A DNA stretch of 64,000 nt from Takakia lepidozioides (GCA_030704615.1 CM060733.1:8804001-8868000), one strand, 5' to 3'; counted from the first letter of the stretch, positions 30,801 to 53,472 are shown. A program made the numbers and translations. Notes: generated by a model from the letters alone, not told the origin.

Positions 30801-33743
30801 AGTCTTGTCATTGACAAAATGACGTCGCTGAGCCCAATTCTGAATAGTGGAAGGCAACCCAAGGAGAAAATACATTTTAACCATACGATCCTTTTCTGCC
30901 GGGTCTATGATATTTTCAACAGCAGCAAATTTAAGATCCATGTAATACTTCCACAAGGATTCCCCAGGTTGGTAAGTCCTAGCTGAAAGCTTGGTAAAGC
31001 AATCCAGAGGCCTCTGAGGAGGTTTGAACAAGGTCTTTGCCCATTCCACCAGAGTTGCCCAGTTGATGCTGGGATCATCCATGACAGCTACATGCAGTAA
31101 GTCACGAGCTGGTCCCTTCATGCTCATCCTAAAGATCGTCATCTTGAAATTCTCAGGCACTCCATTGACACTAGCAATGACTTCAAACATCTGAAGATAT
31201 CTATCAAAGTCTTCTCCCATGGTATATTCTGGGTAAGGTTGAGTGGTCATCAAATGACACGGCAGGCTATGGTTGATGTGACCAGGGAGGACAGACCCAT
31301 GAGCAGGGCAACAGGGAATTATGGGAGCAACACTACCATGCACATATCCAACATTAGATGCAGAATTATAACTCATACTATTATTGCTGGCTGATCCTGT
31401 AGCAGCTGAAGCTGACAGACGTGACGCCACCGTGCCCATGGGGAGAGCAGGTGTTGCCACACTTGGCTGAGCAGCAGGGTTAGTCGACTGTAAGTGGGTT
31501 TGTGGCATTCCACTCATGGGAATAGTGGATGCCACTCCCATCGGTTGTGTTGATACAGATCTGGCTAGAGACAAGGTGTGGTGGCACCCCAGTCTGTGGA
31601 GCAGGGAGAGCCCCCACTGATTGGTCTGCGAAGGCAGGAGTCGGAGCAGCAGACACACTAGAGGGCCCTTGCATCATGACACTCCCACCTTGAACAACAC
31701 CATGCACGTTCAACACAGGAAGACTACCCACATGCATACCTGAATTTACAGGCAACAAATTCCCTCCCCCGAGAGTGTGACTAGGGAAATTCACAACAGA
31801 CAACACACTAGGACTCAAGTTAGCAACCTGGGCCGGCATACTGCTCGTAGTAGCCCAGACATCCAAACCAGACCCTTCGACCCCCTGAACATGAATAGGA
31901 TGGGAGGGCAGACCGCTTAATTCCCGAGCCAACGTAGGCTCGGTCCGTCTAGCCACCAAGGCCTCATCACGCCGATCATAAACAGAAAGGCCCTCAAGGG
32001 TGGCTATCCCAGACCCTTCATCAGTCAATGTAATACCAGTTGGGGACTCTACAACTGCTCCCATCGTCCCAGCATTCAAAAATCCATCATCATTCACCAT
32101 GAAATTACCTGCCTACAGGTTGTCCGATCCCTCATTCACTTCTACTACATTTTCGACCAGCGGCTCTCCTGAATTATTCATGGACCTCTGTCTTCCGGAT
32201 CTCAACCAAATAGTTATAGAATCACCTAGCATACAAGAAACGAGGTTGGATTGCAGGCATAACTTTTAAGCAGTACGGATATGGAGCGTGGGCCGAGCAC
32301 TTGGCGAGCTGTCTTCTGGAACCCAAGTGGAACAATACACCACCCTCAGCACCTTGTGTGACTGTAACTCGTAGATCCCCAACGCCAGCCACTCCCAACC
32401 GTCAGCTCCTTTGAGCCAAAAACCAATGCGGGTGGTGTCACCCTCACTCCAGGTGCGCGAAAGCATAGTCAGGTTTGAACAGTCACTCAATCTCTCAAAC
32501 GCACTCGGGCCAACCACTCATTGTGAAGCAAAGGTAGTATCCACACCCAAGACCACTAGATCAGACGACTGCACTATCAAGGCCCCACCCTTCAGACCAT
32601 CAATTAACTGTGAATAAGTAGGTGCCAAGGCGAAGGGCCGGAGCTGAAACCGCAGTGCCCTCAAGACCAAAGCCCCTGTGCCTTGTAACATTAACGACAA
32701 CCAACTTCGCCCTACCACACCAGGGCCATGATGAAGCTCCGCACTTCGAACACCAGAAAGAGGTAAATCCAAGCCAACTTCCAACTAGGTCAATTCACGA
32801 TGGTGCAGAAAACGCGACTTGATCGTCCTGGACGGTAGACGCTCTTCGTTGTGTAGCTCAAATTCGCGTTTAGCAAGCTGTTTGGCTCTGGATATCACCA
32901 CACCAGGCTCAAGCAAAGGTCGCGTGAACAGGGCCTCGTGATGACTGGTTAGTGCAGCAAGATCACCTCCGACAGCTCTCTCTAAACGCTCAAACCAAAG
33001 CTGATCTTCGTCACATATCTCACACAACAGATCATCCACTTCCTACGACAACTCAATATCTCTCTCTAACTCTGCTATTTGCTGCCTACTTTCGAAATAT
33101 TCAGGGTCTGGATCCACAAAGTTGTCAAAATTATAGTATTCCGGGTCACAGCTATCTAGAGAGCTGTCAGACTTCTCAAACCTTGGCGACCATGCCTCTG
33201 CCTCCCCCAGATCATCATAATCACTACCACCAGGAGAACCCAATGAAACAACAAGGGCTGGAACGCAAGCAGCAGGCTCAGGAAGTGACGACGCTGGCAA
33301 GGCAACACTGCCAGGCCGCGCGCTGTTGGTAGTGTTAGCAACAGCAAGAACGTCAGCAGGGTGAGAAACAATGGGAGGAGCAACAATAACAACACCAGCA
33401 GAATGAGAAGCGGCAGTAGGGTCAGCCTCTACACTAGGATTAGATTCAACAGCAAGTGCCACGCTAATCTGAAGAAATAGGCTCTCCCCCTCTCTGGGAG
33501 CTACACAAGACAAGTCACGAACAGTAGCCATCCCCTGCAATCATACCCCAACGCACATCATGAGACAGCAAAATCACCGTAGCAGGAGAAAATATGGCAA
33601 AGCGAGGAGCCGCCATTGATAACACGCATTAGCGAACCACTTAGGCAGTAGGATGTAGAGCAGATCCCGCAAAAAGACCTAACTGATCCTGACAGCGCGG
33701 GCAGGATCCACCAACGCCTAGAGTACCCGGCTTCTCTCCACCA
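27868..33743 (-). mobile_element. Gypsy element A, 5' internal part (gag, protease, dUTPase-like linker, RT, RNase H), degenerate
   Basis: gag ORFs 30531-32100; protease remnant CVVDT* near 30160; RT with CIDFRKLN, DLASGFWQ, YVDD (28268-29941); RNase H with TDASD, TDHLSL, RLARW (27868-28240). Confidence 0.9.
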
Positions 33744-34203
33744 TAAAACAAGCCTGAAGCATATACTTTTTTCCTCTCAAGAAGCAAGGTTGCACAACAA
33801 AGGGGCGAGCGGAAAGAGCAAGCAACACGCGAGATGAGGATCAAACACACGAATCAGGCACTAAGCAGCTCTCATCCAAAGCTTATACACCAAAATCACA
33901 TATACACTAACACCCGAGTACACCGCCCTGACCTTGTGTCAGGGCGCTATCTTTATACAAAAAGCCCTAGCCGTAGTGGCCCGCCGCGTGGCGAGGCATC
34001 ACAGGCCAAAGCCCACGGCGCTGTCTTGTGGCCCTAGATCTGATGAAGGGCCAGGATCGAGCCACCTACAAAAACTAACCCTAACCTAGATATCATTGTA
34101 ACGGTTTAACGGCTTCATACACCAAAAAAATATACTATGGATGTGTATCGCCGTTTTGGATGAAACGGGCTATTTTCAGGCTAAGCAAATATGGGGCTTT
34201 ACA
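33744..34203 (-). repeat. Gypsy A 5' LTR part (B'), followed by tRNA-type PBS TGGTGGAGAG; TSD AGCT at 34204-34207
   Basis: Reverse complement of 53008-53462 (roughly 95% identical by eye); starts TGTAAAGCC, ends GGCTTGTTTTA directly before TGG. Confidence 0.9.
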
Positions 34204-34814: not shown

Positions 34815-35430
34815 GTGCAGGCACTCCAGGCCACCTTCTCTAAAACCCATTGTCTACCTCTTATGTGCAGTGCAGTCATGGATGATCAGCTACATGTTGC
34901 GCTACTCCAGCGATGCCAATCAGGGCGTTCGCCAACTGGCCTTTCCGAGTCCTTGCGTAAACAAATTCTCTATCATGCGTCTACTCACCGTTTTATGGGT
35001 GATAAGCTTTTCAAGGAGTTCACTAGAGGGGGAGTGCCATGCTACTTGGAGGTGCCACCACGGAGCCAACTAAATGTTTTATTGGAGCGTTTCCATTGTT
35101 CCTTGTATGTAGGTCACCTTGGTATCAAGAAAACTGTGGCCCGCATCCAAGAGGTATACTATTGGCTGGGAATTCACCGCGACGTTACCGAGTTCATCTC
35201 TAAGTGTGAAGGTTGTCGTGCTAACATTGCTCTCCCTAGGGCCCGGATCTTGTATGTGAAGCTACCTTTGTGTTGCTACCGACTACTTGACTAAGTGGGT
35301 AGAAGTCCGGCCTTTGCGTTCCCAAGGCTAGTGATGTTGTAGCTGAGTTCTTCTTCAATGAGATCCTTATGCGGCATGGGTGTCCTCGGGAGATACTAAC
35401 GGATTAGGGCAAGGAGTTTTGTAACCAGCT
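34815..35430 (+). mobile_element. Gypsy A integrase, N-terminal part (HHCC zinc finger and start of core)
   Basis: HCSLYVGHLGIKKT...YYW...CEGC; HGCPREILTD*GKEFCNQL joins in frame to LTVICFNFGVKH at 47430. Confidence 0.88.
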
Positions 35431-35943
35431 TGTCGTGCGCATACGTATCGCTACACAACTACATCGCTGTCCAAACCACACCACACATATATGCACAATA
35501 AAGTAGTCTGCCAAAAAGACACACACTCTCAACACAAGAAATATGAAATCCATCGCTATCACTCTTTAAAAATAGAAGTCGAGCCAGGGGCACCCCAAGC
35601 TATGGGGACTCCACCCCACAACAACCTACACTCCCATCATAAGCACACTCAGATCTAAACGCATGAAGGAGCTCGGTCGCGCAGGCTCAACTCGAGAGAG
35701 ATGAGCTGCGCGACTGCCGCCCTCGTGAAGATAAGACGGGTCAGGTATCAAACTAAACTTGACACCTGATTTAACACTTGACCTAAATCCAAGTGTTAAA
35801 TACAAATAACTAGCTTTATTCTAGCTAGTTTCACACTGTGCTTATTTAACTTGACAGCTGTCGTGCGCATACGTATCGCTACACAACTACATCGCTGTCC
35901 AAACCACACCACACATATATGCACAATAAAGTAGTTTGCCACA
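35431..35943 (-). repeat. Element B 3' terminal block: A (35431-35512) + B (35513-35856) + gc + A (35859-35943), preceded on the sense strand by PPT AGGGGGGCGAT
   Basis: The A copies differ by 1 nt; the B copy matches 47082-47425 with 2 mismatches in 344 bp; palindrome GACAGCTGTC at 35853-35862. Confidence 0.93.
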
Positions 35944-36203
35944 ATCGCCCCCCTAGCTGGTGGATAGGTCCCTCTAACTCCAGATAGCTACAAGATGTAA
36001 TAGCCATAGCCATACTAAGTCCTCTATCACTGTCCCTATCGTGCTCAAACTCTATCAACCAAGAGGCCGGGTACAAGAGTAGCCCCATCGTTAGTCGCCG
36101 TCTTGCAATCTGTGAACTTGAGCCAAGATCTCGTGTGTTCAAGGTCTCCTAGTAGCTTGGCCTTGCATTTCTTGTTAACCTTCCATGGTTGTATCCACTC
36201 CCA

Positions 36204-37703
36204 TTATCCAATGCAATGTGGACATAACCAATCCCCATCCGGAACCATCTCAAGAGGTGGAGTCAAGCATCCCATATGCCAACTTCTAGAGCATCGATCA
36301 CACACCAGCATGGTGGCTGCCTCTTTAGCAGACCCACACAACATGCACCTCAAACCTGCAGATACCACTGCCAGGTTTGGGTCAATCCTGCCATCGACAT
36401 TCGGAAGGTGACGTGGCGCACAATTACGCACATGGTCCTTCCAAGTTATGCCATCCCGACCCTCCAAGACCAAGACACCTGAGGGCAAGACCTCTCGAAC
36501 CCTCAAAATAACACGTCCTGCAGTCACATCCAAGGTCGTAGGAGCAGTCTGCTGCAGATAGACATAGTCACTAGGGTTGAATCTCCGAACCCCAGGACGA
36601 TAGCCCCCACCACGTATGGTAGCATACCTCAACGTATCACGGTGTTGTGCAATGGCAAGGTTCTCGAAAGCCATGGGCATGACTTTCTTGAACAACTCTG
36701 CACGCTGCTCACATGCACGTGCCTACACGTCCGGATCGTCAAGATTAAGAACTGTAGCAGCTTCTCTGCGAATGGATGTAGGCAAATCCGGCTCTCGGCC
36801 AAAGAGAAGAAAGTATGGTGAGAAGGAGGCAAGTGATGCTTGCTTGCTGAACCTGTAGCCCATGGCTAACCAGGGTAACTGAAGGTCCCAATCTCCTAGG
36901 TGTCCCTTCTACAAGCCATACTTGCACAAACCCCTTTTTACTGTCTGAACAACTCTCTCTGCCAAGCCATCGGCCTCAGGATGATCCCGAGAAGTGGTGC
37001 GGTGGTCTATCAAGGCCTTGTCACACAAAGCCTGAAACTCCCCCAAGAACTCTCTCCCTTGGTCCGTGAGTACCTCAGCTGGAGCACCGAATCAGCTAAG
37101 CACACAATCCAAGAATGCATACGCAGCTCCCTCACTAGCCTTATCAGGCAATGGAACCAATTCAATCCACTTGGAGAAGTGCTCCACCATCACCAACACG
37201 TACTTGTTGTGGCGCATGGTCAGTGACAACGGCCCTGCGAAGTCAAGACTCCACCTGTAGCCCAATCCCATGATCGGAAGAGGGTGCAATTGTGGAGTAG
37301 GGGCGTTGAATGAAGCACGCACCCTGTCACACACCATGCACCTAGCCACAAATTGTTGCACCTCTGTGTGCATACCACGCCACCAATAATGCCCCTGCAG
37401 TAGACTATGAGTGCGTCGCACCCCAAAATGCCCCAACTCCTCATGGGCATGCCGCACTAACCGTGCCCGCTGTGTTGGGTGAGGCACAATCCTCACTCGA
37501 CCATCCTCCCACACTCGGAGCAGGTGTATCCCCTCCCACTTGAACCTCTTGGCTCGTTGTAGGATCCGATCCCTCTCCTTGGCAGTGGCTGCAGTGTCTC
37601 CAGTGCGGAGGTAGTCCAACACAACTGAATCCTCATGTATATCTTTGGCGCCACCTTGCTCATTGCTGGCCTCAGGGTCCTCAGACACTTGATCTACAGT
37701 CAT
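36204..37703 (-). pseudogene. Element B integrase (HHCC, DDE) with C-terminal PHD finger; in-frame stops
   Basis: HEELGHFG..CMVC; SLDFAG / LTDQGREF / GLAERVV; PHD CMLC..CDRC..WHMGCLTPPL..VPDGDWLCPHC at ~36207-36350. Confidence 0.92.
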
Positions 37704-37721
37704 CCCTGTTGCAGGTCCAAC

Positions 37722-39331
37722 CTAGCCTTCCGCTGCCAAGATACACAGAAATGCAGATGCATGCCATCCGGGCACCATCTCCTCGTCCGTCTCACCATGC
37801 CACCGAGCTCCAGTGTCATCCTGCTGGCTCGTGCATGGATTGCGACTCAACCCATCTGCATTGCGATTGACCAAACCCGGTCGATGCACCACCTGAAAGT
37901 CATACTCTTGAAGGATGAGTGCCCACCGTGCAAGCTTCCCCGTAAGCTTGTCTGACTCCATCAACCACTTGAGTGGTTGGTGATCCGTGACAAGGGTGAA
38001 GAGATTGCCGTATAGATAGCACCTGAAGTGTGCCACGGCCCACACTGCAGCTAAGCATTCTCCCTCATATGAGCTATACTTAGACTCTGCAGCATTGTTC
38101 GAGCGGCTAGCATAAGCCACTACGAACTCTCTTCCCTCATCATCCACCTGTGTGAGCACTGCTCCAAGCCCCAGCATGCTCCAATCTGTATGCAGCTGAA
38201 AAGGACGCCCCCTGATAGGTCGTCTCAAGATGGGCGCCGAGGTCAACCTCGCCTTGAGCTCTTGAAAAGCTTGTTCTTGCTCATCTTCCCACTTCCACTC
38301 CTGGTCCACCTTGGTCAGCTTGGTTAAGCCTTTGCAATGGCACTAAATCCCTTAACAAACCGTCTGTAATAGTTTGCTAACCCCATGAAAGCTCGAACTC
38401 GGCTCACATCCGTGGGGCGTGGAACCTGTGCAATGGACTCTACCTTAGTCTGTTGTACCCCCAATCATTCAGGATATATCATGTGACCCAGATACTCAAT
38501 CTGGTTGTGGAAAAACTTGCACTTGCCCGGATGTAACTTCAATCCGTGCGTCCTCAAGCGCTCAAATATCCCCTGAAGGTGTCTCTCATGCTCCTCCACC
38601 GTAGCACTAAAGATGATGATGTCATCTATGTAGCACCGAGCAAACTCCACCCCTGCTAGAATCCTGTCCATGACTCTTTGAAACTCAGCGGGAGCGTTTT
38701 TAAGCCCAAATGGTAAGAACCGCCACTGGTATAGGCAATCCTTCCCGTGCTCATTGATCCCCCAGAATGCCGTCTTTTGCTTATCCGCCTCCTTGATCGG
38801 CAACTGGTGATATCCGGATCGTAAATCCAACGTGCTAAAGACCTTGGAATGCCCAATGGCATCAAAGATCTCCTCTAGTGTCGGCATGGCATACCTATCG
38901 GACTTGGTCTGACGATTTACAGGCCGGTAATCACCGCACATACGTCTCTCCGTCCAATTGCCATAGACATCCTTCTTGGCTGGCATCATTGTGGCTGAAG
39001 CATACTCTGCATCAGAGAGCTCCACCAAACCTGCCTCCCAAAGATTTTGAGTTCTGATCTGAATCAAGGACCTCTCCATGTCACTGTATCTATAGGGTCT
39101 CCGAAAGATTGGCGTGTTAGTGGCCAATTCAATGCGAATCTCTTGACCCTTCAGTGCTCCCAAGTCTTTTAAACTGAAGGCAAAGCAATTCCTATAAGCC
39201 CTCAGGAACCGCCGTATACGTTGTCTCTCTCCTCCGGTGACAATGGGTCCAATGTCAGGCTCCCAATTGTCCTCCGTAACTGCAACCTTAAGTCCAGTGG
39301 GCTTAGAGGTAGAGGACGCGTCCCGTGGTTG
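37722..39331 (-). pseudogene. Element B reverse transcriptase and RNase H
   Basis: CGDYRPVN, DLRSGYHQ, PFGLKNAP, YIDD, TDWS, YSSYEGECLA, TDHQPL, NADGLSR. Confidence 0.93.
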
Positions 39332-40708
39332 CTATGCTGCAACCTCTTGAGCAGTACTCCCTTCCTGCTCAGTCAATGACAAGGCCTCATCCTGCCCCAT
39401 CATCTCATCATTAAGAACCTCCTCATCCCGAGAAGAATCCCCAACCTCATCCATCACAGCTGCCTTGGCTGCCAACTCCCTCTGAACCTCGAGTACCTCC
39501 CACGTGTGCCATGGATGTCTACACCCCGTGGTCCTCACCGGCTCGCCCCCACTCGCTGCCTGTACCGTCTCGGTAGGCAGAGAGACCGTCAAGGGAAGTG
39601 CACTCCGCACTCTACGTTGCTCAGCCATAGCCAAGCTGATAATCCAGGTCAAGCAATTGAGATCCATTGCTTGCCCCAACACCTGACGACGTGATGCCTC
39701 AGAAAGAGAAGGCACCGCTGTGGTCCCAGTGGAAAACCCCATAGCCCGCTCTCGCTCGTCGGCATTAGGCTCCACTAACTGTTGCATCTGAGCATCCCAT
39801 AGGAGGCCAGGTCCACCATCCCGAAAAGCATGGGATCCTGGGAAGCTGAGCAGTGTAGGTAATGCTGCTCGTGGTTGACCCACCCTGTTGACCACTGCCA
39901 AAGGCGAACGGTCATCGTGTCTCACACGTTGAGACTGCCTCCCTGTGTCCAAAATGCTGTCCACTATGAGGTGTGTTGGCCGCGGCACCCCATCAAATGC
40001 ACGCTTGAGCAGTGCGGGTGGCATCAAGTTAATCCACCATAGCCGTGGACGATGAGCCCGTGATCCCACTGCAGCTGCATCCAGCAGCACTGCTGACCCA
40101 AGCCACGACCGGACTTGATGCACACTGGCCATCACCCTGGCCCGAGAATCGCCCATCAGTGGCACATTCTCCAAGATGTATGCTGGTGATACAGCTTGAT
40201 GAAGCTGCAAGTGGCGCAAAATCCGCACCATCTCCCAAAACAGACCTGTCCTCGAGTCTCGCAATCCATTGCCATGCCCGGCTGATGAATGCCCTTGGCA
40301 GGGCCAACCTGCCACTACCAGATCAATGGAGCCAACCTGCTCCAAATCCGGCGCCCCCAGCAACGAAATGTCTGCTGGCAAGGCTTGTTGGTATCCACGA
40401 ACTGCAGACACTGGCAACAAAACAGGGTACTGCTGTACCAACTGAGCAACATGGCGCAGTGAGACGCGTCGTGCAGTCTCATCCCTCTCCACATACAGGT
40501 AACGCCTTACCCGCACACCTGCCTGTAGCACAGCAGCCAATCCGGTGCTGATCCCGCCAAACAAGTCCAGAAGGCAAATGCCTTCATCCGGATACTGCCA
40601 CACAATAGGTGTGGTATCCAATGGTGACAACTGAGGTGGTTCTGGTGCAATACCCGCACTCTCCTCCTCTCCTGACGGTACAAAATCCTCTACCCGGGCT
40701 TGTTGCAC
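39332..40708 (-). CDS. DNMT3-like C5 cytosine methyltransferase domain inside element B pol
   Basis: Motif I LLDLFGGISTG, IV GWPCQGHS, VI ILENV, VIII AHRPRLWWINL, IX ERERAMGF, X RQVLGQAM, in unpermuted order; same frame as the protease and RT ORFs, separated from each only by a single TAG. Confidence 0.92.
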   Translation of the reverse strand: MQQARVEDFVPSGEEESAGIAPEPPQLSPLDTTPIVWQYPDEGICLLDLFGGISTGLAAVLQAGVRVRRYLYVERDETARRVSLRHVAQLVQQYPVLLPVSAVRGYQQALPADISLLGAPDLEQVGSIDLVVAGWPCQGHSSAGHGNGLRDSRTGLFWEMVRILRHLQLHQAVSPAYILENVPLMGDSRARVMASVHQVRSWLGSAVLLDAAAVGSRAHRPRLWWINLMPPALLKRAFDGVPRPTHLIVDSILDTGRQSQRVRHDDRSPLAVVNRVGQPRAALPTLLSFPGSHAFRDGGPGLLWDAQMQQLVEPNADERERAMGFSTGTTAVPSLSEASRRQVLGQAMDLNCLTWIISLAMAEQRRVRSALPLTVSLPTETVQAASGGEPVRTTGCRHPWHTWEVLEVQRELAAKAAVMDEVGDSSRDEEVLNDEMMGQDEALSLTEQEGSTAQEVAA

Positions 40709-40726
40709 CCGTCGATCAACAACCTG

Positions 40727-43534
40727 CTACAAATCCTTGCTTGTACCCCACAATGGAGTGTGAGCAACCATGGCAGACAACTCCGCCATACCATGCATGT
40801 CATCCTGCTCTGCTGGAGGTGGCACATCTTCTGCATAGGCATTGCCTTCCAGCAACTCTCCAGGCCAACTAACTGCAGCTGTAAAGGCGGCTAGTGTTGG
40901 CATCTTGCCCCGTTGGGCAGCCGCAATACCCCCAATGAATGTCACAGGGAGCTGTGCACGATGACCATCCCCTGACTGCCATCCAGGCCTGTAGAATGCT
41001 GACTCCTCCCAAAAGTCCAGGGTGAAGCCCATGGGGTATAACACTGCCCCACCAACAAGGACATCGTAAGAGACCGCGTCTGTCACAAGGGCCTTGGCTC
41101 GCATGACTGAGCCATCGATAGGATGATCCGGCTGCAGTCTAATGGCCAACTGATGCCGTGTCATGCCCCGAGCCTGCTCTGATCCTCCCAGAGATGTCTG
41201 TATCTGGAAAGGACAAGGCTCCATATCCGCCTCCATGAGGCCCAAACCTGCAATAGCAGCTCTGCCCAACATCAGTGGTTGAGCTCCCGAGTCCAACAAG
41301 ACCCGCAGTGGCCGGTACTTCTTGCCTGCCGGACCACTCAAAGAGAAAATGCCATCCTGGTTGTCTAACAAGACAACTCCAGGTGTCACCATGGCGCGCT
41401 CAAAGGCTGGCCTAGCTGGCAGCTCCGTCAACCTGGCAGCTGCAACTTGCCATGGCGCAGCCGTGGCAGTCTTGACCCTCAAATCCGAGGATCCCTCTGC
41501 CACTACACCTTCCAGTAACTCCACAGAAGATGAAGTGACCTCCCCACTCTCACAGAGTGTTGCTGCTAGTCTGAACACTGCAGCTGGTCTTACCCCCGGC
41601 GTCGCAATCATGGTTGCCGAGAACAGTGGGGCTTGACACACAGAGGTGACTGCCCCCAACAACACACCGGCTGCACTAGCCTTGGCAGCAGGTGTCAGTG
41701 TTGTACGTGTAGCTCTCCCCAATGGCATAGAAACCTCCGCCTCGGTAACAGTCGGGCGAGAACTAGGTGCCATGGATGGCGTTGACACTGTCTCCGCCAA
41801 GGTGAATGACTGAGGCAGCCTCGCCTGACGGTTTGCCTCCCCAAGTTGTGGATCCAACTCCACCTCTGCACCTCGTGGCTCAGGAACTCGTGCTGCTCCT
41901 CGAGTCACGGCTGCATCAGACTCCACCTGCTCTAGTGGTAGTGCTGCTCCGCACATGAATCCCATGCCTCCCATATCTCCTCCCTTGGGAGCAGGATGTG
42001 GACCATCCCGCCTGGGAGCCGGTACCGCCTGAGCTATAGCCATTGCAGCGAGCCTCTGCTCTAGCTGCTGAAGTCAGTTGGCCATGCCTTGGTCAACACC
42101 CTGACCTCCGCGTCCGTGGCCATGTTGAGCTTGCCCTTGGCCTGCACCTCGTGCCCGACCACCTCGTCCTCTCTGGGCTGGTCCACCTCGCCCCGGCCAC
42201 CATTGTTCCCTTGGAACTGGCCTGGGCGCAACTCAGGATGCAAGTCATAACACTGGGCATCTCCATGCCCATACTTGCCACAATACCCACACTGCAACTG
42301 TGCAGGCGGTGTTGTGCCGGCCTTTTGCCACTCTCTGGGCAATCTCTCTTGATATGGGGTCCTCCACATGTCCAACATATCACCCCTGGTTGCTGTTGGC
42401 CTGCAAAAGATGCCACGGGCCTCTGCACCTGAGGTCCCCTGTAAGCTCCATGGAACTTGGGTTGGGAAACCTTGCCCCCTGACCACGCTGTTGGGCAGTC
42501 CCTTGTGCCTGTGGGCTGGCAGCTGCGCCTCGTGCATGCATGTCCTTGCCAAACCCAATGGTAACAACTCGCTCCTCCACCATGTTGAGCTCAATCCGCT
42601 CAGCTAGCAGAAACACATCTGCTAATGTGGGTTGGGCTGCTTGTAACAGGGTTGCATCCCGCACCCTTCTCCTGAGCTCCTTGTCCAAAATTCCATACCA
42701 GAACTGGATTGCCTGAGCTTCAGTAACCCCTTGGGTCACACTTATCAAGCGCCTCATACGAGTGTAGGCCTCTCGCAAGCTCTCACTGGGTTTGCGCTGG
42801 AAGTCTTGCAAACTTCGCAGCTTCTCTGTCCGTACACCTTGGCAGTTCCTCCGCAACTCCTGGAAGAACTCCACCACCGGGTTGAATCTAGGCACATGTG
42901 TTGTAGTCGTGGCAAGAGGAGTAGTAACACCTTTTGAACTGGTACCACCTCCAGAAGTACCAGCACTACTTGTTCCACTACTAGTGCTGGTAGTGGGAGA
43001 TATCGGTACTGATGCAGCAGCTACTGGTCGCGTCGTGCCTCGAGTAATGGAGACGTAGTCAGGTGACCAATACATCCTCCACTCCTCAATCTCTGCTTCA
43101 TGTCCTCGCCTGAACTCGTGGTAATCGTCCATAGGCGGGCCTTCCAAATGCTGGAATAGTCCCTTCCACGCCATGAATGGGGTGAATAGCTGTGGATTGC
43201 GCATCTGCTGCAAATCACACCAGCTGTCGAACTCCTGGATAAAGTCATCCAACTCGATTGTGCCCACAGCTCCAGAGTACCTACGAGGCCCCTTGGTAGC
43301 TCCATGCATCTCCTCCATGTCGTCCCACAACAATGGCGAATGAAACTGCACACATGTTGATGAAGCCTCCGAGTCTGTGTCTGACTCTGCACTAGTTGAG
43401 GGTGGCGGTGAAGGTGGTCTGAACCGAATACCTCGTCTTGTGAACCCACTCTCACTGTTACTGCCTGTAGCCGTACTCCCCTCAAAACCCTTGGGTAACT
43501 CCATGATGACACTCACAATGTGCACCTCCCCCAC
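40727..43534 (-). pseudogene. Element B gag (two CCHC-type knuckles, frameshifted) and aspartic protease
   Basis: ELDDFIQEFDSWCD, FQRKPSESLREAYTRM; CWTCGGPHIKRDC and CGYCGKYGHGDAQC in shifted frames; protease LLDSGAQ...DVLVG. Confidence 0.88.
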
Positions 43535-44054
43535 GTGACACTATAGGGCTCTAGTACTAATTCTAATAGTGACACGGGTGGACACCTGTTGCAGTTTAAG
43601 GGTCATATCCCAATGGCTCAGGGCACCTGCACCTGCATCCACCGCAAGAACTCCTATGGTTGGCTGGTCATCAACCCAGCCTCACCATAGAAGAAACACT
43701 GGTGGTCTTGCTGGTCATCACTCCAGCCTCACCACCGACAGCATACTCTAGGATTGACCGGTGATCAAATCCGGCCTAATCCCTATGAAAGCAAGCGCCC
43801 ACACAAAACCAACATGGCGCACAGTCAAGCATGCAGGTGTTGGGGGGGATTTAAACACAAGAAATCAAAACATCAACACCCCCACACCAAAATCCAGCTG
43901 CAATGCTGATCTTGCAGAATATCCCAGCCCAAAACCTCGGACTGACTGGCCTCCACCAAGAGAGGCTTTGGCAACTACGAGTACAAGGTAATGAAAATAG
44001 TGCAGAGATGGAGGGGAAGAATAGAAGCCCGCCCAAGCAAGATCTAATCCTGAT

Positions 44055-44648
44055 CTATGCTATCAACTTCCAGACTTCTCTCAAAGTGCCTCGCTCTGCA
44101 TGATGGTAAGGTGTAGGAGGTATATCTATGTCCAGAAACCTGCCACTAACTTTGTCCCAAGCTACAGTAGCTCGCTCTAACCAACCCTCCTCCTCTTTCT
44201 GCCAGGTAGAGACAAAGCAACACTCTGCTATCTCCCGCTCACTGAACACTAAAGAAAACAAAGGTAGGGTCTGATAGTCTCTCAACTCGAAAGCTTTGAG
44301 ACGGTTGCGGGTGTCCTCATTGCGAATGACTGCATCTCCTTCAAACAGAACAAACTTGTCCTCGCTAATGAACCCCCGCTCGTGGTTGCCTTGTGCAGAG
44401 CGTGTCCGGCTGCAACGCTGTCTGATTGCACAAACTTGTGTAGCTCCTGCTCCTCTGCTCCAGTACACCACAGCCTTGTGGCTGAACACCTTGGTCCCCG
44501 GGGCTGTCTTTGGCTGTGTTCCAAGCCTAGCTTTCACCCACTTTGGTATTTCACTTACAGCTGCAGAACTGCTGGCTCCAACAGAGTTCTGACTGTCCAA
44601 AGCGATATTGAGGCCCTCAACTGCTAATGCATGACCCCCAGTATGCAA
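44055..44648 (-). CDS. Unassigned 197-aa ORF in the 5' cargo region of element B
   Basis: Open frame on the element sense strand with protein-like composition; no recognised motif; non-ATG start. Confidence 0.3.
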   Translation of the reverse strand: MHTGGHALAVEGLNIALDSQNSVGASSSAAVSEIPKWVKARLGTQPKTAPGTKVFSHKAVVYWSRGAGATQVCAIRQRCSRTRSAQGNHERGFISEDKFVLFEGDAVIRNEDTRNRLKAFELRDYQTLPLFSLVFSEREIAECCFVSTWQKEEEGWLERATVAWDKVSGRFLDIDIPPTPYHHAERGTLREVWKLIA

Positions 44649-46541
44649 TCAACTCGTCCAACTGTTCTCCACTCAAATCAGTCTGAGTTCCTTGGGAAAC
44701 ATAAATCCTGTCCCCTTGTGTGCACATGCTAAGAGAAGAGACCTGCCCTTCAATTACGTCCTCATTTCCCCCAGCCATACAAGGAGGACATCCACAGATT
44801 TGTCTCTCAAATAGACCAGAACCTGTTCTAGAAACAGAATTGTGGATCTTTCATGGCACACTCACACTCTAAAAATTCCATAGATTTTTAGCAGAGTCCA
44901 AAAAACAAAAACAATTAGATAGGTAGATTTCCCCTTTCTGCAGCTATCCCCTCAAAAACTGAGTCAAACGGAGCTCATTTGACAAAGATATGACCAACCA
45001 GGCTCTTTAAACATAACACCATTTTTTTATAAAAAAAATTAATAAGACAAAACAAATACAAGGATTTTTTTTATTTTTTTTCAATACTTGTCTTGGTTCC
45101 CTGTTCCCTGGTTCCCTAAGAATTCCTTGGACTCATAAACTGCAAGGCCAATTGGTCCTGAAAGAAATGGCCTCACATTAATCACGCATTCAGTATGCTC
45201 AGGGGAGAGAGGCAAGGCGGACGCAGACGATGGCAGCGATGGCCAAGCCTGCGCAAGCAAGCAAGAACAAGGAAGTGGTGCGGGGTGTTGGCTAATTCGG
45301 CCGATCAAAGACCTGATCAAAGGGTTGCACATGAGCAGCTTGCATGCTCGTCAATCTCCAAAGCCATGCAGCAGAGATGCCCGTCAGCTCCTACCAGCTC
45401 CTGGTTCTGCTCAGTCCTCACGGCTACCTACTCTTTGTCGTACACAACACTCAAAACCAGAAATCACCCTCGCTCCCCTTCCGGCTCACGAGGTTCAAGC
45501 TGGTTCCACTCACACAGGATGTCCAGTGAATGCCTGGAAGTCTAGTACACCACAACACTCGGCTTAGAACAAGCACCTCTAGGGAAGCAGTGAAGTTGCG
45601 ATTTCCTACTTATCTCTTTAGTCCGCCTCTCATCCTCACATCAGCATTTCGCACGCAACGATTCGCAGATGGCAACCTCTCTACCATCCTCCACGCTACA
45701 GCGGAGTTGCAGCAAACTGGTCTGCACCACAAGGAAAGAGGTCTGCATCTGGGGCATTGGAAGCCCTATCTTCCGGACTCACTTGCAATGGCCCTGACTT
45801 GTGCAGATCACCCAACCAGGCACATACGGGTATGTCCCAGCTGCAAATCTTCTTTCTCAAATCGTCATGGTCAAAACCTTCCCTAGAGCTAGAACACTTT
45901 GCGCATTTCAGTCAATGTGAACTTCATCCCCCTTCTTCAACAGCTCTTGAACACCTTCAGTTGGACTATCACGATGTGGGAAATTAACTATATTATCTTG
46001 CACACCTCCAAAAGGACGAGGTCCGATTGAACATCACACTTACTGTCAACGAATGTGGTGCACAGTCAGGAACACTTGAAGTGCACGTGGTGCGCAATCC
46101 CTCTCTGGCTTTTTGTGTTTCCTTTCATGGACGTCTGTTGTGGAGCAGGAAACCATGTCCGTGAAGTACTTCCACTACTTGTGTCCACACCACCATGTCC
46201 AGCCAGCTTGATGCTAATGATCGCCGTCTCTCTCATCCGACCCTCAGCAGCCTGTCGTGCTCACCCCCTCCACGGGAACTTCATTCGATAGAGAGAGATC
46301 TGTTTTCCTGAATCACATAGCTGCGCCTCTAAAACCGTATCCTATGTTGATTGCTTATTCTTGCATAAAGCGCAGGAAACGCAGCCCGCAGTTCACAAGC
46401 ACTAAGCTCGCCACATAAACAGAATCAGTTTCAAGAAACATGACATGGGAGATACAAGACACTGGTCTTCGATTCAAATGTCGGGCCCTGCTTTTTCTTT
46501 GCTCAAAGGAGCTCGAGCAGAGGAAGAAACGAAAACCCACT

Positions 46542-46810
46542 TTACCGCTGCTGGTGCTGGATTCCAATGAGCACCTTTAACACGTCTTGCATGGAGGGGC
46601 GTCTATCAGGCACCTCGTGTGTGCAAAGCATGGCCACATCCATCAGCTGTAGCAGCTGCTTGTCAATACCTATGGTCTTCAGCAGTTTCACATCAAGAAC
46701 TTGTCTGGCCAGCTTTGGCTTCGCCAATGCTTGCCGCACCCACTGTGAGCTGTTCATGCCCTTACTGACCAGAACGAAGGCTGCTTCCCCGCAGTATAGC
46801 TCCGTCCTGC
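46542..46810 (-). pseudogene. Captured C-terminal fragment of a receptor-like protein kinase
   Basis: QWVRQAL...QVLDVKL...LLQLMDVAMLCTHEVPDRRPSMQDVLKVL matches the RLK/Pelle subdomain X-XI pattern. Confidence 0.75.
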
Positions 46811-47068
46811 CCCTGCGGCCTTATGCCAGAACCAACGCTATCCTTACCAGTGGAAAGACACCAGTTCTTTGCCCCTGCTTGACATGCAGCCTGCCTCCAT
46901 GGACCATCTATATAAACAGAAACCAGAGATGATCGAAACCTGCATGTTTTTTTTTTTTTTTTTCTTAAAACTTCTCAAACTAAGCACTACTTTCGCACAG
47001 GTAATCATACAAGTGCTAACCCTCAACTCCTACCTTGCACTCACAGGTAAGAGCTCATCTCTCTCGAA

Positions 47069-47425
47069 TGATAAACAAGCTAAAAAGACACACACTCTCA
47101 ACACAAGAAATATGAAATCCATCGCTATCACTCTTTAAAAATAGAAGTCGAGCCAGGGGCACCCCAAGCTATGGGGACTCCACCCCACAACAACCTACAC
47201 TCCCATCATAAGCACACTCAGATCTAAACGCATGAAGGAGCTCGGTCGCGCAGGCTCAACTCGAGAGAGATGAGCTGCGCGACTGCCGCTCTCGTGAAGA
47301 TAAGACGGGTCAGGTGTCAAACTAAACTTGACACCTGATTTAACACTTGACCTAAATCCAAGTGTTAAATACAAATAACTAGCTTTATTCTAGCTAGTTT
47401 CACACTGTGCTTATTTAACTTGACA
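47069..47425 (-). repeat. Element B 5' LTR part (B'; TGTCAAG..TTTATCA) with hairpin array; putative self-priming PBS at 47052-47067
   Basis: 47052-47067 is the exact 16-nt reverse complement of 47261-47276; no TGG tRNA PBS follows the terminal CA. Confidence 0.85.
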
Positions 47426-48165
47426 AGCTCCTCACGGTGATTTGCTTCAACTTCGGTGTCAAACATTCCACCACCGCCCCATACCATCCCCAGACCAATG
47501 GCCTTACGAAACGCTTCAACCAAACTCTTTGCCGAATGTTGGAGAAGAATGGCGCACTTATCGGGGAGTGGGATACCTTTCTTCCCCCGATTCTCTTTGC
47601 TTATCGCAGCGCCGTGCATGCTAGCACCAAGAAGACTCCTTTTGAGTTACTGTATGGTCGCAAGAGTGTTTCTCCTTTGCATTCTACCCCTCTTATCTCT
47701 ACTGTTGCTGATCCGGTTGATCTTGAGACCTTTGTTGAGGATCTTCATGCTCGACATGCGGTGTCTATCCATGATGCCAAGATGAACATTGGTAAGGCTC
47801 AACTAACCCAGGCCCGTAATTTTAACAAGCGTGTCAAGTATTCTAACATGTTTCAGGTGGGACAGACCGTGAGCGTTCGATTACAGCATGACAAACATGC
47901 ATGCAAATCTAAGCTCAAGATCGACGGTCCATACTTGATCTATCATATTTTACGCGGGCGACGTGCTCTTCTTCTTCCCCAAGGCTCTAATACTGAAGTG
48001 CGGGATGAACCTGTTTCCTTGACAGACTTGGTGCATTCCGAGCTAGTTTTTGATCTTACATGTATCAATGTGGAGGGGCACACGGTGGGGTGATGTCTTG
48101 ATCTTCTTAGCCGATCTACTTCAGCTTAATCTACTTCTCTTCTCAGCGGCTTAGTCTTAGTTTGC
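47426..48165 (+). mobile_element. Gypsy A integrase, C-terminal part
   Basis: TTAPYHPQTNGLTKRFNQTL (catalytic E changed to K), TPFELLYGR, GPY motif. Confidence 0.88.
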
Positions 48166-50129
48166 TGTCGTGCGCATACATATCGCTACACAACTACATC
48201 GCTGTCCAAAACCACACAACACATGTGCACGCCACACACTAGTATATCACTAGTCCACCACTAGTCTAGCCACTAGTCCAACCACTAGGCTACAATTAGT
48301 CAATCACTAGGCTGCCACTATGCTGCCCACTATGGCAGTCACTAGTCCATACAATCGCCCCCCTAGCTGGTGCTTAGGTCCCTCTAAGTCCGGGTAGCCA
48401 CAAGATGTGATAGTGACCATAGCCTCACTTAGTCCTCTACCACTGTCCCTACTACACTCAAACTCAATAGATCAAGAGGCCGGGTACAAGAGTTGTCCCA
48501 TCGTTAGTCGCCGTCTGGCAACCTGTGAACTTGAGCCTGAGATCTTGGGTATTGACTCCTATGAGCTTGGCCTCCCATGTCTTGTGAGCTGCCACTAGTC
48601 ATATCCACTGCCACTATCCCAAGCAGTGTGGACATAACCAATCTCCATCAGGAACCCTCTCAAGAGGTGGTGTCAAGCATCCCATGTGCCAACCTCTTGA
48701 GCATCGATCACACACCAGCATAGTGGTGGCACCACGAGCATGCCCACATAGCATGCAACGCAATCCTGCAGATACCACTGCAAGGTTGGGATCTATCCTC
48801 CCATCCATATGTGGAAGGTGACATGGCGCACAATTACGTACATGGTCTTTCCATACCATGCCATCTTGACCCTCCAGAACCCTCGTGGCTCAGGAACTCG
48901 TGTTGCTCCTCGAGTCACGGCTGCAGCAGACTCCACCTGCACTAGTGGTAGTGCTGCTCCGCACATGAATCCCATGCCTCCCGCCTGAACTCATGGTAAT
49001 CATCCATAGGCGGCCCCTCAAGGTGCTGAAACAGCCCCTTCCATGCCATGAAAAGTGTAAATAGTTGTGGATTGCGCATTTGCTGCAAATCACACCAACT
49101 ATCAAACTCTTGGATAAAATCATCCAACTCGATGATGCCCACCGCCCTAGAGTACCTTCGTGGCCCCTTGGTAGCTCCATACATCTCCTCCATTGTGTCC
49201 CACAACAATGGCAAGAAAACAACTTGCACCGCCGGTATGAGTCCTCCTGATTCACAATCCGAATCAGAACCTTCCGTAGAAGACACAGGAGGTGAAGGTG
49301 GCCTAAACCGCACACCTCGTCTCGTGTACCCACTAGTATCGCTAGTGCTCAAACCGACACTGTCCCCAGCAACTAGTGGCACCTCCGTGTTGACACTCAA
49401 CCGGTCATGAACATGTCTCTAACCCCCTCTCCACAAGGTAACCGGGTAGAGAACCTGTTGCGGCTTATGGTTTGGAATACTAAGTTCCTAACATAGCCTA
49501 CACCTGTACCTGCATCCACCGCAAGCACTCCTATGGTTGGCTGGTCATCACCTCCAACCTCACCACAGGAGAAACAATGATGGTCTGGCTAGTCATCACC
49601 CCAGCCTCACCATCGACAGCATGCTCTAGGACTGGCCGGTGATCAAATCCGGACCAATCACCTATAAAAACAAGTGCCCACACAAAACTAGCATGGCGCA
49701 CAGTCAAGCATGCAGGTATGGAGGGGATCCAAACACAAGAAATCAGAACGACAACTCCCCCACACCTAAAACAACTCCACGGTGTTGCTAATGCAAGGAC
49801 ACCCCAGCCCAAACCCGGACTGACTCTTGCCTCCACCTACGGGAAGGTCTTGGCCTAATGAGAGGGTGGAAACTACGAGGAAGAGAAACTAAAGCAATGC
49901 CTAACCCCAACATGCCCTCATCCCAACACTTTTCCTCTCATCTCTTCCCTCACTTGCATGACCATGGGACTATCATGAAGATACCCCTCAAACCGCCCTC
50001 CACGAGCTTCAAAATTCGGCCTTCAAGACCACATGCCGGTCCTTAGGCAGTCCACCAATCCACGAGTCAGCACAGGCCGTCCACAGGTCAACACGGGCCG
50101 CCACAGACCAGCACAGGCCCACACAGCTC

Positions 50130-51055
50130 ACTGGTCATAGCCGTCACAGCCCCACACAGGCCACAGCCTGTCACAGCCCTACACAGTCACAGGGTCACAG
50201 CCCCACAGGCCGCAGCCTGTCACAGCCCCCACGGCCACAGGTCACAGCCTGACACAGCCCATCACAAAGGTCACAGGGTCACAGCCCCAAAGGCCACAGC
50301 CTGTCATTGCCCCTCACAACCCCATAGGCCACAAGGCACAGCCTGTCACAACCCCTCACAGCCCGTCATAGCCCCACAGGCCACAGGGCACAGCTTGTTA
50401 CAGCCCCTCATAGCCCGTCACAGCCCAATAGGCCACTGGGCGCAGCCCGTCACAGCCCGTCACAGCCCCACAGGCCACATGACACAGCCTGTCACAGCCC
50501 CTCACAGCCTGACACAGCCCCACAGGCCACATGGCTTGGCCTGTCACAGCCCTACACAGGTCACAGGGGTCACAGCCCCAAAGGCCACAGCCCCTCACAG
50601 CTCGTCACAGCCCCACAGGCCACAGGGCACAGCCCACCACAGTCTGTCACAGCCTGTCACAACCCGTCACAGCCCCACAGGCCACAGGGCACAGCCTATC
50701 ACAGCCCCTCACAGCCCGTCACAGCCCCACAGGCCACTGGGCACAGCCTGTCACAGCCCACCACAGCCCGTCACAGCCCATCACAGCGTGTCGCAGCCCG
50801 TCACAGCCCCACAGGCCACAGGGCATAGCCTGTCACAGCCCCTCATAGCCCGTCACAGCCCCATAGGCCATAGGGCACAGCCTGTCACAGCCCCTCACAG
50901 CCCCACAGGCCACTGGGCACAGCCTGTCACAGCCCGCCACAGCCTGTCACAACCCCTCACAGCCCGTCACAGCCCCACAGGCCACATGGCACAGCCTGTC
51001 AAAGTCCCTCACAGCCCATCATAGCGTGTCACAGCCCGTCACAGCCCCACAGACC
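50130..51055. repeat. Minisatellite array built from gtcacagccc / cacaggcca units inside element C
   Basis: Dozens of degenerate ~10-nt units visible directly. Confidence 0.95.
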
Positions 51056-51499
51056 ACTCATGACAGTTTAGCCATTTCTCCAAGGGGTTTAGCCACGCCA
51101 AGCTAGGGTTTGTGTCTCTTGGACTCTAGGCTTCTTTGCACCGAGCTATGGCGGCTGTGAAGAAATCAGCAAGTATTCTTGCTCTTTCGGCTCCCACACA
51201 CCACCAATAGTAGCCCTAAGCCATGAGGAAGATGGTTGCCACAAACCAAGCCTTCTTTCTCATTTAGACTCCCCAAACACGCCACTAAACTCAATGGCAA
51301 ACAACCAAGCCTTGCTGGTTTCCAGCCTTTGTGAGCACTCATTCAAGCGTTTCCCTTGGCCATAGCATCTGTCTTAGAGCCTATTCCTACACCTGCCACT
51401 TCAAGAGCCATGCTCTATCGTAGGCTTGAGGTTGAAACCCCAACTCAGAACACGCTCTACAAGTGTCGGACTGTCACATAAGAGCAGATCAGCGGGAGA

Positions 51500-51920
51500 T
51501 CAGCCCCTTACCTTCTCTTCTAGTTCTCTTAAGCTTGAAAACAAAAGCCCAATGGACTGAAGGCATGCTCCACACATGCCCCACTCTCACCACCAGAGAA
51601 TCAGCCCCTTTGCTTTCTTTCTTGCACCCACCAACCTGAAAATACACGCTTCAGCGAGCTGGAAGCATGCTCCACACATGCCCTACAGGGAAACCAGCCC
51701 CTTCCTTCTTTTCTTGCACTCCCAAACCTGAAAGTACAAGCCTTCAACAGGCTGAAAGCATGCTCCACACATGCATTGCTCTCACATAAGGGAAGTCAGC
51801 CCTTCCCTCTTCCTTGCTTGCCCTCCAAGCTTGAAGATGGAAGCTTCAATGAGCTGAATACATGCTCCACACATGCAACCTCTTCACTCAAGAGGTATCA
51901 GCCCCCTATCTTGGCTCCTT
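51500..51920. repeat. Four diverged ~95-100 bp tandem units with core catgctccacacatgc
   Basis: Core seen at ~51563, 51665, 51758 and 51861. Confidence 0.85.
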
Positions 51921-52995
51921 AGCTCCTTGATGCTCTCTAAGACAAGACTAAGCACTCCACAGCCCTTGCCAAGCTCCTGAAACCCTAAGGCTTACATTTC
52001 CAGCCACAAGACACTCCTCTTGTGGTACAAGAGCTCTTCTTCCAAGCTCTGAAACCCTAGGTGCACATTCCATGGCCTTGCCGCACCTCTTAGCTCCTGT
52101 TCCAGCCCTGCTCTTGCCATGACAAGAGACCTCTCAATGCTGAAGCTCGAGATTGAAACCCAATCTCAACGTACTCCACAAAGTGTACTGATTTGCCCCA
52201 AGCCAAATCAGCCCTTTCGTTTGGTCTTGCAATCCTGCAGCATGGTGCTTTCATCTCTGAAGCTGAAGATCGAATGCCAAGGTCTACCACCTCGTAACCC
52301 ACATTGCCTCCGCTTCTAATAACCAAGAGCTCTACGGTGCTCCTTGCATAACAACATGGTTTCTCTCATTCTCAAGCAAAAACCACAAGTGCTACAACTA
52401 ACTCGTATCTGGCACTCACAGATACGAGCTCATTTTTCTCGAGTGATAAAGAAGAAGAATACAAGCACGAGCTCACAAATCTGAAGCATAAACTCATGCA
52501 TATATAACCTCATCACTCAAATACAAGTCAAGCCAAGTGCACCCCACGCCATGGGGAATCCACACTACGGCGCCATAGCTAGGCGCGGTGAGGCTCAACT
52601 CGAGAAAGATGAGCCTCTTGCGCTTGCCGTGAAGATAACCACTCCAGGGCCTAAATCTGCCTTGACCCCTGGATTGACACTTGGGCCAATCCCAAATATC
52701 AATATGTAAAAACTAGCTATTTCCTAGCTAGTTTCACACTAGTGGTAAAATAACTTGACATTGCGGATGATGACTCTTGGGATCCTCGGACTTGACCTCT
52801 CTAGGACTTAGAACACTTCTATGACATCTCACCATCTGTACTCCCTGCATGGTTTTCCTAGCCAAGGGTTTTGTCCTCGGCCCACCTTACAGGTGCCAGG
52901 TTTTCTCTTGGTAGGTTTTTCACCCAGCAGTGGAGGGTGATATTTTCCTAATTATTTGTCTTCCTTCGCGGAGCTCAGGGATTTTTGTGGGGGGT

Positions 52996-53472
52996 AGGCT
53001 TCAGAAATGTAAAGCCCCATATTTGTTTAGCCTGAAAATAGCCCGTTTCATCCAAAACGGCGATACACATCCATAGTATATATTTTTGGCGTATGAAGCC
53101 GTTAAACCGTTACAATGATATCTAGGGTTAGTTTTTGTAGGTGGTTCGATCCTGGCTCTTCATCAGATCTAGGGCCACAAGACAGCGCCGTGGGCTTTGG
53201 CCTGTGATGCCTCGCCACGCGGCGGGCCACTACGGCTAGGGCTTTTTGTATAAAGACGGTGCCCTGATACAAGGTCGGGGCAGTGTACTCGGGTGTTAGT
53301 ATATATGTGATTTTGGTGTACAAGCTTTGGATGAGAGCTGCTTAGTGCCTGATTTGTGTGTTTGATCCTCCGCTCGCGCGTTGCTTGCTCTTTCCACTCG
53401 CCCCTTTGTTGTGCAATCTTGCTTCTTGAGAGGAAATGAGTATATGCTTCAGGCTTGTTTTAAGGCTTTACA
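52996..53472 (+). repeat. Gypsy A 3' terminal block: A' (52996-53005) + aa + B' (53008-53462) + A' (53463-53472); PPT GGGGGG at 52989-52994; TSD AGCT at 53473-53476
   Basis: AGGCTTCAGA-aa-TGTAAAGCC ... GGCTTGTTTTA-AGGCTTTACA. Confidence 0.82.

Follow-up and report, generated by a model that had tools for sequence, protein, structure and literature searches.

How a retroelement without terminal repeats comes to lie inside an exact target site duplication (TSD) is the question raised by element C, a 4,595-bp copy on the minus strand (52760 to 48166) of a 64,000-nucleotide stretch of the Takakia lepidozioides genome (GCA_030704615.1 CM060733.1:8804001-8868000), the whole of which is called the window here. 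Element C starts with TGTCAAGTTA, ends with ATGCGCACGACA and has GCAA on both sides, its minus-strand left edge reading ...catcatccGCAA/TGTCAAGTTATTTTACC... (52764-52761/52760) and its right edge ...GTATGCGCACGACA/GCAAactaag (48166/48165-48162). An earlier inspection of the DNA by itself (the sequence-only reading) had proposed a TTGC duplication on the plus strand and termini shared with a diverged sister copy, element B; the duplication was confirmed at four of four positions (52761-52764 and 48162-48165) and the terminal words were found to be exactly those of B. In the window, exact matches to TGTCAAGTTA are confined to 35856, 47425 and 52760 and those to ATGCGCACGACA to 35431, 35859 and 48166, and because the boundaries of C were set by homology to element B, the chance of the TSD match is 1/256. 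With its own TSD, a diverged subfamily and exactly the ends of B, C is an independent insertion, as had been claimed. It consists of one B' segment, a site resembling a primer binding site (PBS), an internal region, a polypurine tract (PPT) and one A' segment, and is without the GC-B'-A' tail of B; no B'- or A'-like sequence was found beyond either end of C, and the window yielded no other copies and no solo units. We ascribe the missing tail, with about even confidence, to recombination between two A' copies after insertion of a full-form element.

The features of C are, from its 5' end:

52761 to 52764, no strand: TSD at the 5' end, TTGC on plus and GCAA on minus, matching 48162-48165 at 4/4 positions
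52444 to 52760, minus: B' segment, 317 bp, from TGTCAAGTTA to ...TTTATCA, aligned to both B' segments of B
52598 to 52607, minus (element 154-163): putative self-primer stretch TTTCTCGAGT and putative transcript 5' end, complementary to the PBS-like site
52426 to 52443, minus: PBS-like site CTCGAGAAAAATGAGCTC, directly after B', conserved with TTCGAGAGAGATGAGCTC of B
51494 to 51877, minus: about four tandem repeats of ~95-105 bp in the 5' internal region, from sequence comparison
50059 to 51047, minus: minisatellite of ~1 kb with ~10-bp units, GGGCTGTGAC-like on the minus strand, no counterpart in B
48982 to 49837, minus: gag-like region, 75% identical to B 43107-43957
48881 to 48982, minus: 102-bp piece, 97% identical to B 41871-41972, flanked by two deletion joints relative to B
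48614 to 48880, minus: open remnant of the integrase C-terminal tail with PHD finger, TAG at 48616-48614, 82% identical to B 36466-35941
48355 to 48364, minus: PPT AGGGGGGCGA, also in B (35954-35945) and all related loci
48166 to 48354, minus: A' segment of 189 bp that starts with TTGTATGG and ends with ATGCGCACGACA; 48237-48320 is an 11-bp tandem array
48162 to 48165, no strand: TSD at the 3' end, GCAA on minus

The layout from B' (52760-52444) to an A' after the PPT had been described before and stands, with the start of A' corrected from 48353 to 48354 (TTGTATGG). B' of C is about 70% identical to the two B' copies of B (35856-35510 and 47425-47079), with the first 14 nt invariant, and its A' matches both A' copies of B at 95% identity over the last ~60 nt. 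Element B, which served as the reference for the full form, has the layout B'1-PBS-internal-PPT-A'1-GC-B'2-A'2, with B'1 and B'2 99.1% identical. Its parts, delimited by sequence comparison, are:

35427 to 47429, minus: sister element B with its TSD AGCT (element 47425-35431)
47425 to 47079, minus: B'1
36204 to 36695, minus: open reading frame (ORF) with the PHD finger
35954 to 35945, minus: PPT
35944 to 35859, minus: A'1
35858 to 35857, minus: GC
35856 to 35510, minus: B'2
about 35516 to 35431, minus: A'2

The ends of these elements were compared with those that reverse transcription would be expected to build. Some 150 nt into B' there is a perfect complement to the site following B', 16 nt long in B and 10 nt long in C, and the same complementarity was seen over 12 nt in Calypogeia and 12-17 nt in a metagenome family. 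Because the sequences differ between lineages yet stay complementary, the two sides covary, and a putative self-priming of the Tf1 type is suggested; no tRNA-type TGG PBS was found at the PBS-like position of C. The family in this respect resembles Tf1/sushi-type Ty3/Gypsy elements, with a covarying complement of the site after the repeat lying ~150 nt into the 5' repeat, priming being putative here. Tf1 has canonical long terminal repeats (LTRs). The PBS would put the end of U5 at the end of B' and the PPT would put the start of U3 at the start of A', and with these two limits the reverse-transcribed LTR would therefore be A'-GC-B'. A' would then be the 5' part of U3, and B', judged from the positions of PBS and self-primer, would hold the 3' part of U3 with the promoter, followed by R and U5. 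The comparison supports a placement of both integrated ends (the start of B' and the end of A') inside this would-be LTR, at the palindrome GACA-GC-TGTC. That the ends are internal to the repeat built by reverse transcriptase (RT) is one part of the earlier 1-LTR-circle model that stands; its further claim, that C is a 1-LTR-circle product, is not established. We propose that the DDE integrase of the lineage would join the internal site ...GACA/GC/TGTC... to the target, and not the ends of the A'-GC-B' LTR; use of this site would be the reason why every integrated copy starts with B', ends with A' and has a 4-bp TSD.

The PHD-tail protein has hundreds of homologues, the nearest named ones being from Marchantia polymorpha and Calypogeia fissa, on which ground the window was taken to be of liverwort type. 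The loci compared numbered 12 at chromosome or scaffold level and 80 from metagenomes. The full form B'-internal-PPT-A'-GC-B'-A' is kept across the Marchantia, Calypogeia and metagenome relatives, with ends TGTCA[A/T/C].../...CAC[G/A]ACA. A perfect 4-bp TSD flanks all 11 complete copies (5 LTR-less, 6 full), and their ends are homogeneous across species; the end heterogeneity that the sequence-only reading had set beforehand as fatal to its model was not seen. The complete copies are:

window B: TSD AGCT, full
window C: TSD GCAA, LTR-less
L083: TSD CTAA, full
L084: TSD ACCA, full
L107: TSD ATGC, full
L031: TSD CATA, full
L037: TSD AAGG, full
L088: TSD TATT, LTR-less
L007: TSD TGTT, LTR-less
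L017: TSD ACTA, LTR-less
L036: TSD TACA, LTR-less

The LTR-less form is real and recurrent. L088, a 9.75-kb copy in the chromosome-scale Calypogeia fissa assembly, has B' and PPT-A' at its opposite ends and TATT as its TSD, with no additional B' or A' within 10 kb. Several metagenome contigs also carry this form inside TSDs. The count of B'-internal-A' against full loci that had been suggested earlier was carried out on PHD-anchored 3' ends in chromosome-scale assemblies, giving 9 full copies (window B, L001, L085, L090, L091, L107, L083, L084 and L087) to 2 LTR-less (window C and L088), a fraction of 2/11. Among distinct loci of the metagenome family, 22 LTR-less and ~12 full copies were counted, with replicate contigs concordant in 8/8 groups, a count which comes from short-read assemblies, is an upper bound and was not relied on. 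It was set aside because L095 conflicts with L093, L094 and L096: its 99.6% identity to the full-form L093 stops at the last 10 nt of A', where a different flank takes over. Similarly, L086, from an older M. polymorpha scaffold assembly, has an inverted structure starting inside A', whereas the same region in the newer chromosome assembly (L085) is a normal A'-GC-B'-A'; short-read assemblies are unreliable at the A'/B' repeats. P0048 and P0076, found on many contigs and considered as young paralogues, were rejected as single loci sampled repeatedly. At the 5' side, 15 ends were visible (window B, C, L007, L017, L021, L031, L036, L037, L040, L041, L083, L084, L088, L093 and L107), and among these neither the mirror form B'-A'-GC-B'-internal-A' (0/15) nor conventional A'-GC-B' LTRs at both ends (0) were found.

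Logan k-mer contigs from four runs were aligned to window 47600-53100. Read depth over the whole length of C was tens to thousands of times the flank depth in every run, which places C in a high-copy non-autonomous subfamily, and the minisatellite and ~100-bp repeats, being at high read depth, are therefore common to this whole subfamily. A joint that goes back from 52760 to 48164 was present in 4/4 runs and corresponds to A' end-GC-B' start, and joints from 48347-48356 to 52444-52446 correspond to B' end/A' start; since both joint types occur in the reads, the subfamily of C has full split-repeat members. The best-supported B'/A' joint is exact, from the U5 end ...TTTATCA to the U3 start TTGTATGG, with variants that keep 1-2 PPT bases, have lost 5-7 nt from U3, or have lost 1-2 nt from U5, making at least 5 join points in reads of the C subfamily. 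The joint of B (35510-35520 vs 47069-47081) lacks the last ~13-18 nt of U5 and has TTTT microhomology, and the B'2/A'2 joint also deviates in L020 (+22 nt) and L022 (-10 nt). This joint looks like an end-joining product formed afresh at each insertion, in the manner of 2-LTR circle junctions. The variable, end-joined B'/A' joint supports this part of the general model of the sequence-only reading. Relative to the subfamily majority, C has up to 188 differences over the 5.5 kb compared, flanks included, and about two thirds of the transitions are A/T in C and G/C in the reads, a pattern that fits an older, deaminated copy, older than B. No flank-to-flank (empty-site) joint was present among the read joints listed, and no second copy of the host sequence that could serve as an empty site was found in the window.

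In the explanation by tail loss, replication-competent copies would have the form B'-internal-PPT-A'-GC-B'-A', and C would have entered in this full form and then shed GC-B'-A' (~0.5 kb) when its two A' copies underwent unequal recombination or single-strand annealing; this process, to which solo LTRs also owe their origin, would leave B'-internal-A' inside the original TSD. The segment absent from C is exactly bracketed in full copies by the direct repeats A'1 and A'2 (86 bp in B, 98-119 bp in Marchantia and Calypogeia, 94-100% identical in young copies), full members exist in the subfamily of C as judged from the reads, and the LTR-less form is a minority where assemblies are trustworthy. 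Other deletions strike the same region: in the metagenome loci L065 (1541-1817) and L077 (3321-3602) the PHD frame runs at its end straight into the latter half of B', followed by A', the deletion having taken the PPT, A'1, GC and half of B'2. C would also have had time for the loss, because it appears to be older than B (up to 188 differences, against 99.1% identity of the B' copies of B). LTR-less and full copies stand at 12 to 2 in an older metagenome burst and at 11 to 8 in a younger one (Fisher p = 0.13), a shift of the sign that gradual loss would produce. Several observations weigh against tail loss. Nothing within C separates loss from direct insertion, as both give an identical B'-internal-A' in an intact TSD; terminal branches in the younger metagenome burst are shorter for the LTR-less copies than for the full ones (median 0.037 vs 0.051, Mann-Whitney p = 0.035, from short-read contigs), contrary to a loss of the tail in older copies; tail loss does not seem to be fast, because old full-form copies persist, such as L107 (A' copies 80% and B' copies 87% identical, TSD ATGC intact); and the intactness of L088, LTR-less with a perfect TSD, is similar to that of its full-form neighbours. 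With ORF intactness as an age proxy, all copies were broken to a similar degree. Recombination between A' copies of a B-type element had been named by the sequence-only reading as the rival to its own model; it would yield the same molecule and is now somewhat favoured.

Direct integration of a unit-length molecule, either a putative 1-LTR circle or a linear cDNA cut in both LTRs at GACA-GC-TGTC, with formation of a 4-bp TSD, is possible for C but in our view doubtful. The CA-GC-TG palindromic junction is conserved from the window to Marchantia and Calypogeia, the GC is missing from the integrated ends as expected of a dinucleotide removed in 3' processing, and retroviral integrases can cut palindromic LTR-LTR junctions, regenerating processed linear DNA (PMC1180852, PMC1905944). 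It is in keeping with this route that the B'2/A'2 joint resembles end joining anew at each insertion, usually as a precise junction of U5 end and U3 start, that LTR-less copies with exact ends and TSDs recur (L088 TATT, L007 TGTT, L017 ACTA, L036 TACA), that in the younger metagenome burst their age does not exceed that of full copies, and that 1-LTR circles are abundant and partly formed during reverse transcription (PMC3766001; 10.1101/2022.09.25.509424). We would extend this only tentatively to the lineage as a whole, which would then normally integrate via cleavage of the permanent palindrome in circular cDNA, with full copies being opened 2-LTR circles and the LTR-less ones being 1-LTR circles opened in this way, or linear cDNA cut twice, and hence primary products of insertion and not of decay. 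Circular substrates, however, imply that LTR-less copies should dominate: in extrachromosomal circular DNA reads of the Gypsy-type HMS-Beagle, 1-LTR circles make up 54.7% and 2-LTR circles 6.4% (10.1101/2022.09.25.509424), and the several-fold excess over full copies that direct integration predicts contrasts with 2/11 in the chromosome-scale count. Moreover, the two identical sites of a 2-LTR circle predict the mirror form as often as the full form, against 0/15 mirrors and 7 full copies with a visible 5' end (p ~0.008; 4:0 with p ~0.06 in chromosome-scale assemblies only), and this absence lowers our confidence in randomly opened by-product circles as the substrate. Entry of C as the mirror form from a 2-LTR circle, followed by quick loss of the first B'-A'-GC by recombination between B' copies, would also leave B'-internal-A' inside the original TSD and would explain why mirrors are unseen, since B' repeats of 317-347 bp with a gap of just ~0.1-0.2 kb between them would be expected to collapse more quickly than the A' pair; we consider it improbable, as it predicts LTR-less copies to be at least as frequent as full ones (2 vs 9 in the chromosome-scale count) and no intermediate is present among the 15 visible 5' ends. 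Least probable of all, and very unlikely, is an assembly artefact in which the locus carries the full tail and its two A' copies were collapsed by the assembler. Short-read contigs do misjoin here (L095 vs L093; L086 inverted at A', with L085 normal), and none of the k-mer contigs listed bridged the joint of A' and flank at 48166, but nested high-copy elements were assembled over 64 kb, including the intact A'-GC-B'-A' of B 12 kb away, which would be hard to achieve without long reads; a 0.5-kb collapse within a long read is unlikely, and an LTR-less copy with a TSD is also present in the chromosome-scale Calypogeia assembly.

If the LTR-less copies had been inserted as such, they would record in the genome the use of retroelement circles as integration substrates; circles are generally held to be dead ends, and the family would, if this were true, offer a natural test bed for an old question of retroviral integration. 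Even on the conservative explanation by tail loss, annotation is affected, as copies with DDE-integrase TSDs and with split repeats or none are missed or wrongly bounded by LTR finders, and dating by LTR divergence is inapplicable to the LTR-less form; the split-repeat Gypsy family is abundant in liverwort genomes. C itself had been expected to escape LTR finders, and we agree, since it is without a terminal repeat. It is also probably not reverse-transcribable again, because the 3' R is missing.

The layout has relatives among known systems. DIRS-order elements (Ngaro, PAT-like, TOC1 of Chlamydomonas) are like B in their order A1-internal-B1-A2-B2, in which the B1-A2 joint equals the joined termini. 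DIRS-order elements have a tyrosine recombinase and produce no TSD, and it is in elements with this enzyme that split repeats are otherwise usual. B, unlike these, has a DDE integrase (Integrase_H2C2, rve) and no Phage_integrase match in Pfam, and a 4-bp TSD is present in every complete copy of the B/C family, perfect in all 11. TOC1 is a non-autonomous DIRS (PMC9940879). Closest in description is KnitGypsy-Dnmt3 of the charophyte alga Klebsormidium nitens, given in a figure legend as having DIRS-type repeats (A-coding-B-A-B) and Gypsy domains (de Mendoza et al. 2018, PMC5890265, Fig. 4c legend); like B it combines a Gypsy pol carrying a DNA methyltransferase (DNMT) domain with this repeat layout, the likeness being one of layout and domains as described. 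Because it is recorded for KnitGypsy-Dnmt3, the split-repeat layout on a DDE-integrase element is not new; PMC5890265 is silent on its TSDs, termini, palindromic junction, self-priming PBS, integration mechanism and LTR-less derivatives, and no published account of TSDs, palindromic junction, mechanism or LTR-less derivatives of split-repeat Gypsy elements was found in the literature. The combination of A-coding-B-A-B repeats, Gypsy domains and DNMT is present in B and in its Marchantia and Calypogeia relatives, while C has just the first A and first B of the scheme and no DNMT. If its tail was lost, C resembles solo LTRs in arising by unequal recombination between direct repeats with the original TSD kept, and differs in that the short A' pair would recombine and that the whole internal region, one B' and one A' survive. 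To retroviral circle junctions the likeness, from sequence alone, lies in a CA-NN-TG palindrome whose cutting on both strands by an integrase could give processed ends, and in the U5/U3 joint of full copies, small deletions included. In retroviruses, however, the palindrome exists in the circle only, equals the normal LTR ends and has 4 bp between CA and TG, whereas in the B/C family it is permanent inside the RT-defined LTR and has 2 bp between them.

Pfam domains of B are, in order, PF00145 cytosine methylase, RVT_1, RT_RNaseH, Integrase_H2C2, rve and a terminal PHD finger; PF00145 lies in pol at window 39332-40708 on the minus strand (E 3e-13), between the protease-like part and RT, and the PHD ORF matches PF00628 (E 1.2e-11). 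A DNMT-bearing Gypsy lineage thus seems, by domain content, to reach liverwort-type genomes. As a separate observation, the metagenome locus L093 has a called gene at 5764-6246 with the same methylase Pfam family. C is in comparison a decayed non-autonomous derivative, keeping only the gag-like part and the integrase-tail PHD frame (the latter translated by eye). Its non-autonomous status follows from the 5.4 kb missing relative to B, which hold the protease-like part, DNMT, RT, RNase H and integrase core. C lacks the RT-RNase H-integrase pol of an autonomous Ty3/Gypsy element that B has in RVT_1, RT_RNaseH, Integrase_H2C2 and rve, and neither copy has two direct LTRs at its ends, C being without a terminal repeat and B having split repeats. 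A PPT, a PBS after the 5' repeat, TG...CA ends and a short TSD, as in Ty3/Gypsy elements, are all present in C (TGTC...GACA, 4 bp). A cut-and-paste DNA transposon with short terminal inverted repeats (e.g. Ginger) was considered and rejected, as only TGTC/GACA is inverted and an RNA-based cycle is indicated by the PPT, by the PBS-like site and by homology to a sister with RT.

Within C, about 2.6 kb of lineage-specific sequence follows the PBS-like site and includes the minisatellite, which is G-rich on C's own strand; the ~100-bp tandem repeats are likewise absent from B. The B counterpart of the gag-like region gave a weak Retrotrans_gag match (Pfam, E 0.011). The deletions that flank the 102-bp piece remove, relative to B, 1.1 kb on one side and the 5.4 kb on the other. 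This piece is 97% identical between C and B though neighbouring stretches are just 75-82% identical, and loose read ends at both of its borders run into autonomous-element sequence. It looks, from these comparisons, as if the non-autonomous lineage were a mosaic, or as if the 102-bp piece were a strongly conserved cis element.

B and C lie 740 bp apart in the same orientation, both inside one host Gypsy on the opposite strand, of which plus-strand pieces were found at 34815-35294 (Integrase_H2C2, before B) and 47437-48093 (an rve_3 remnant, between B and C). The reading frame of the host ends at 48093, ahead of the insertion point of C. The paired insertion of B and C in one host could be due to chance or to targeted integration, perhaps via the PHD finger. 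A pair of inverted 460-bp repeats, 94% identical (33741-34203 on plus and 53008-53465 on minus), brackets the host element together with B and C.

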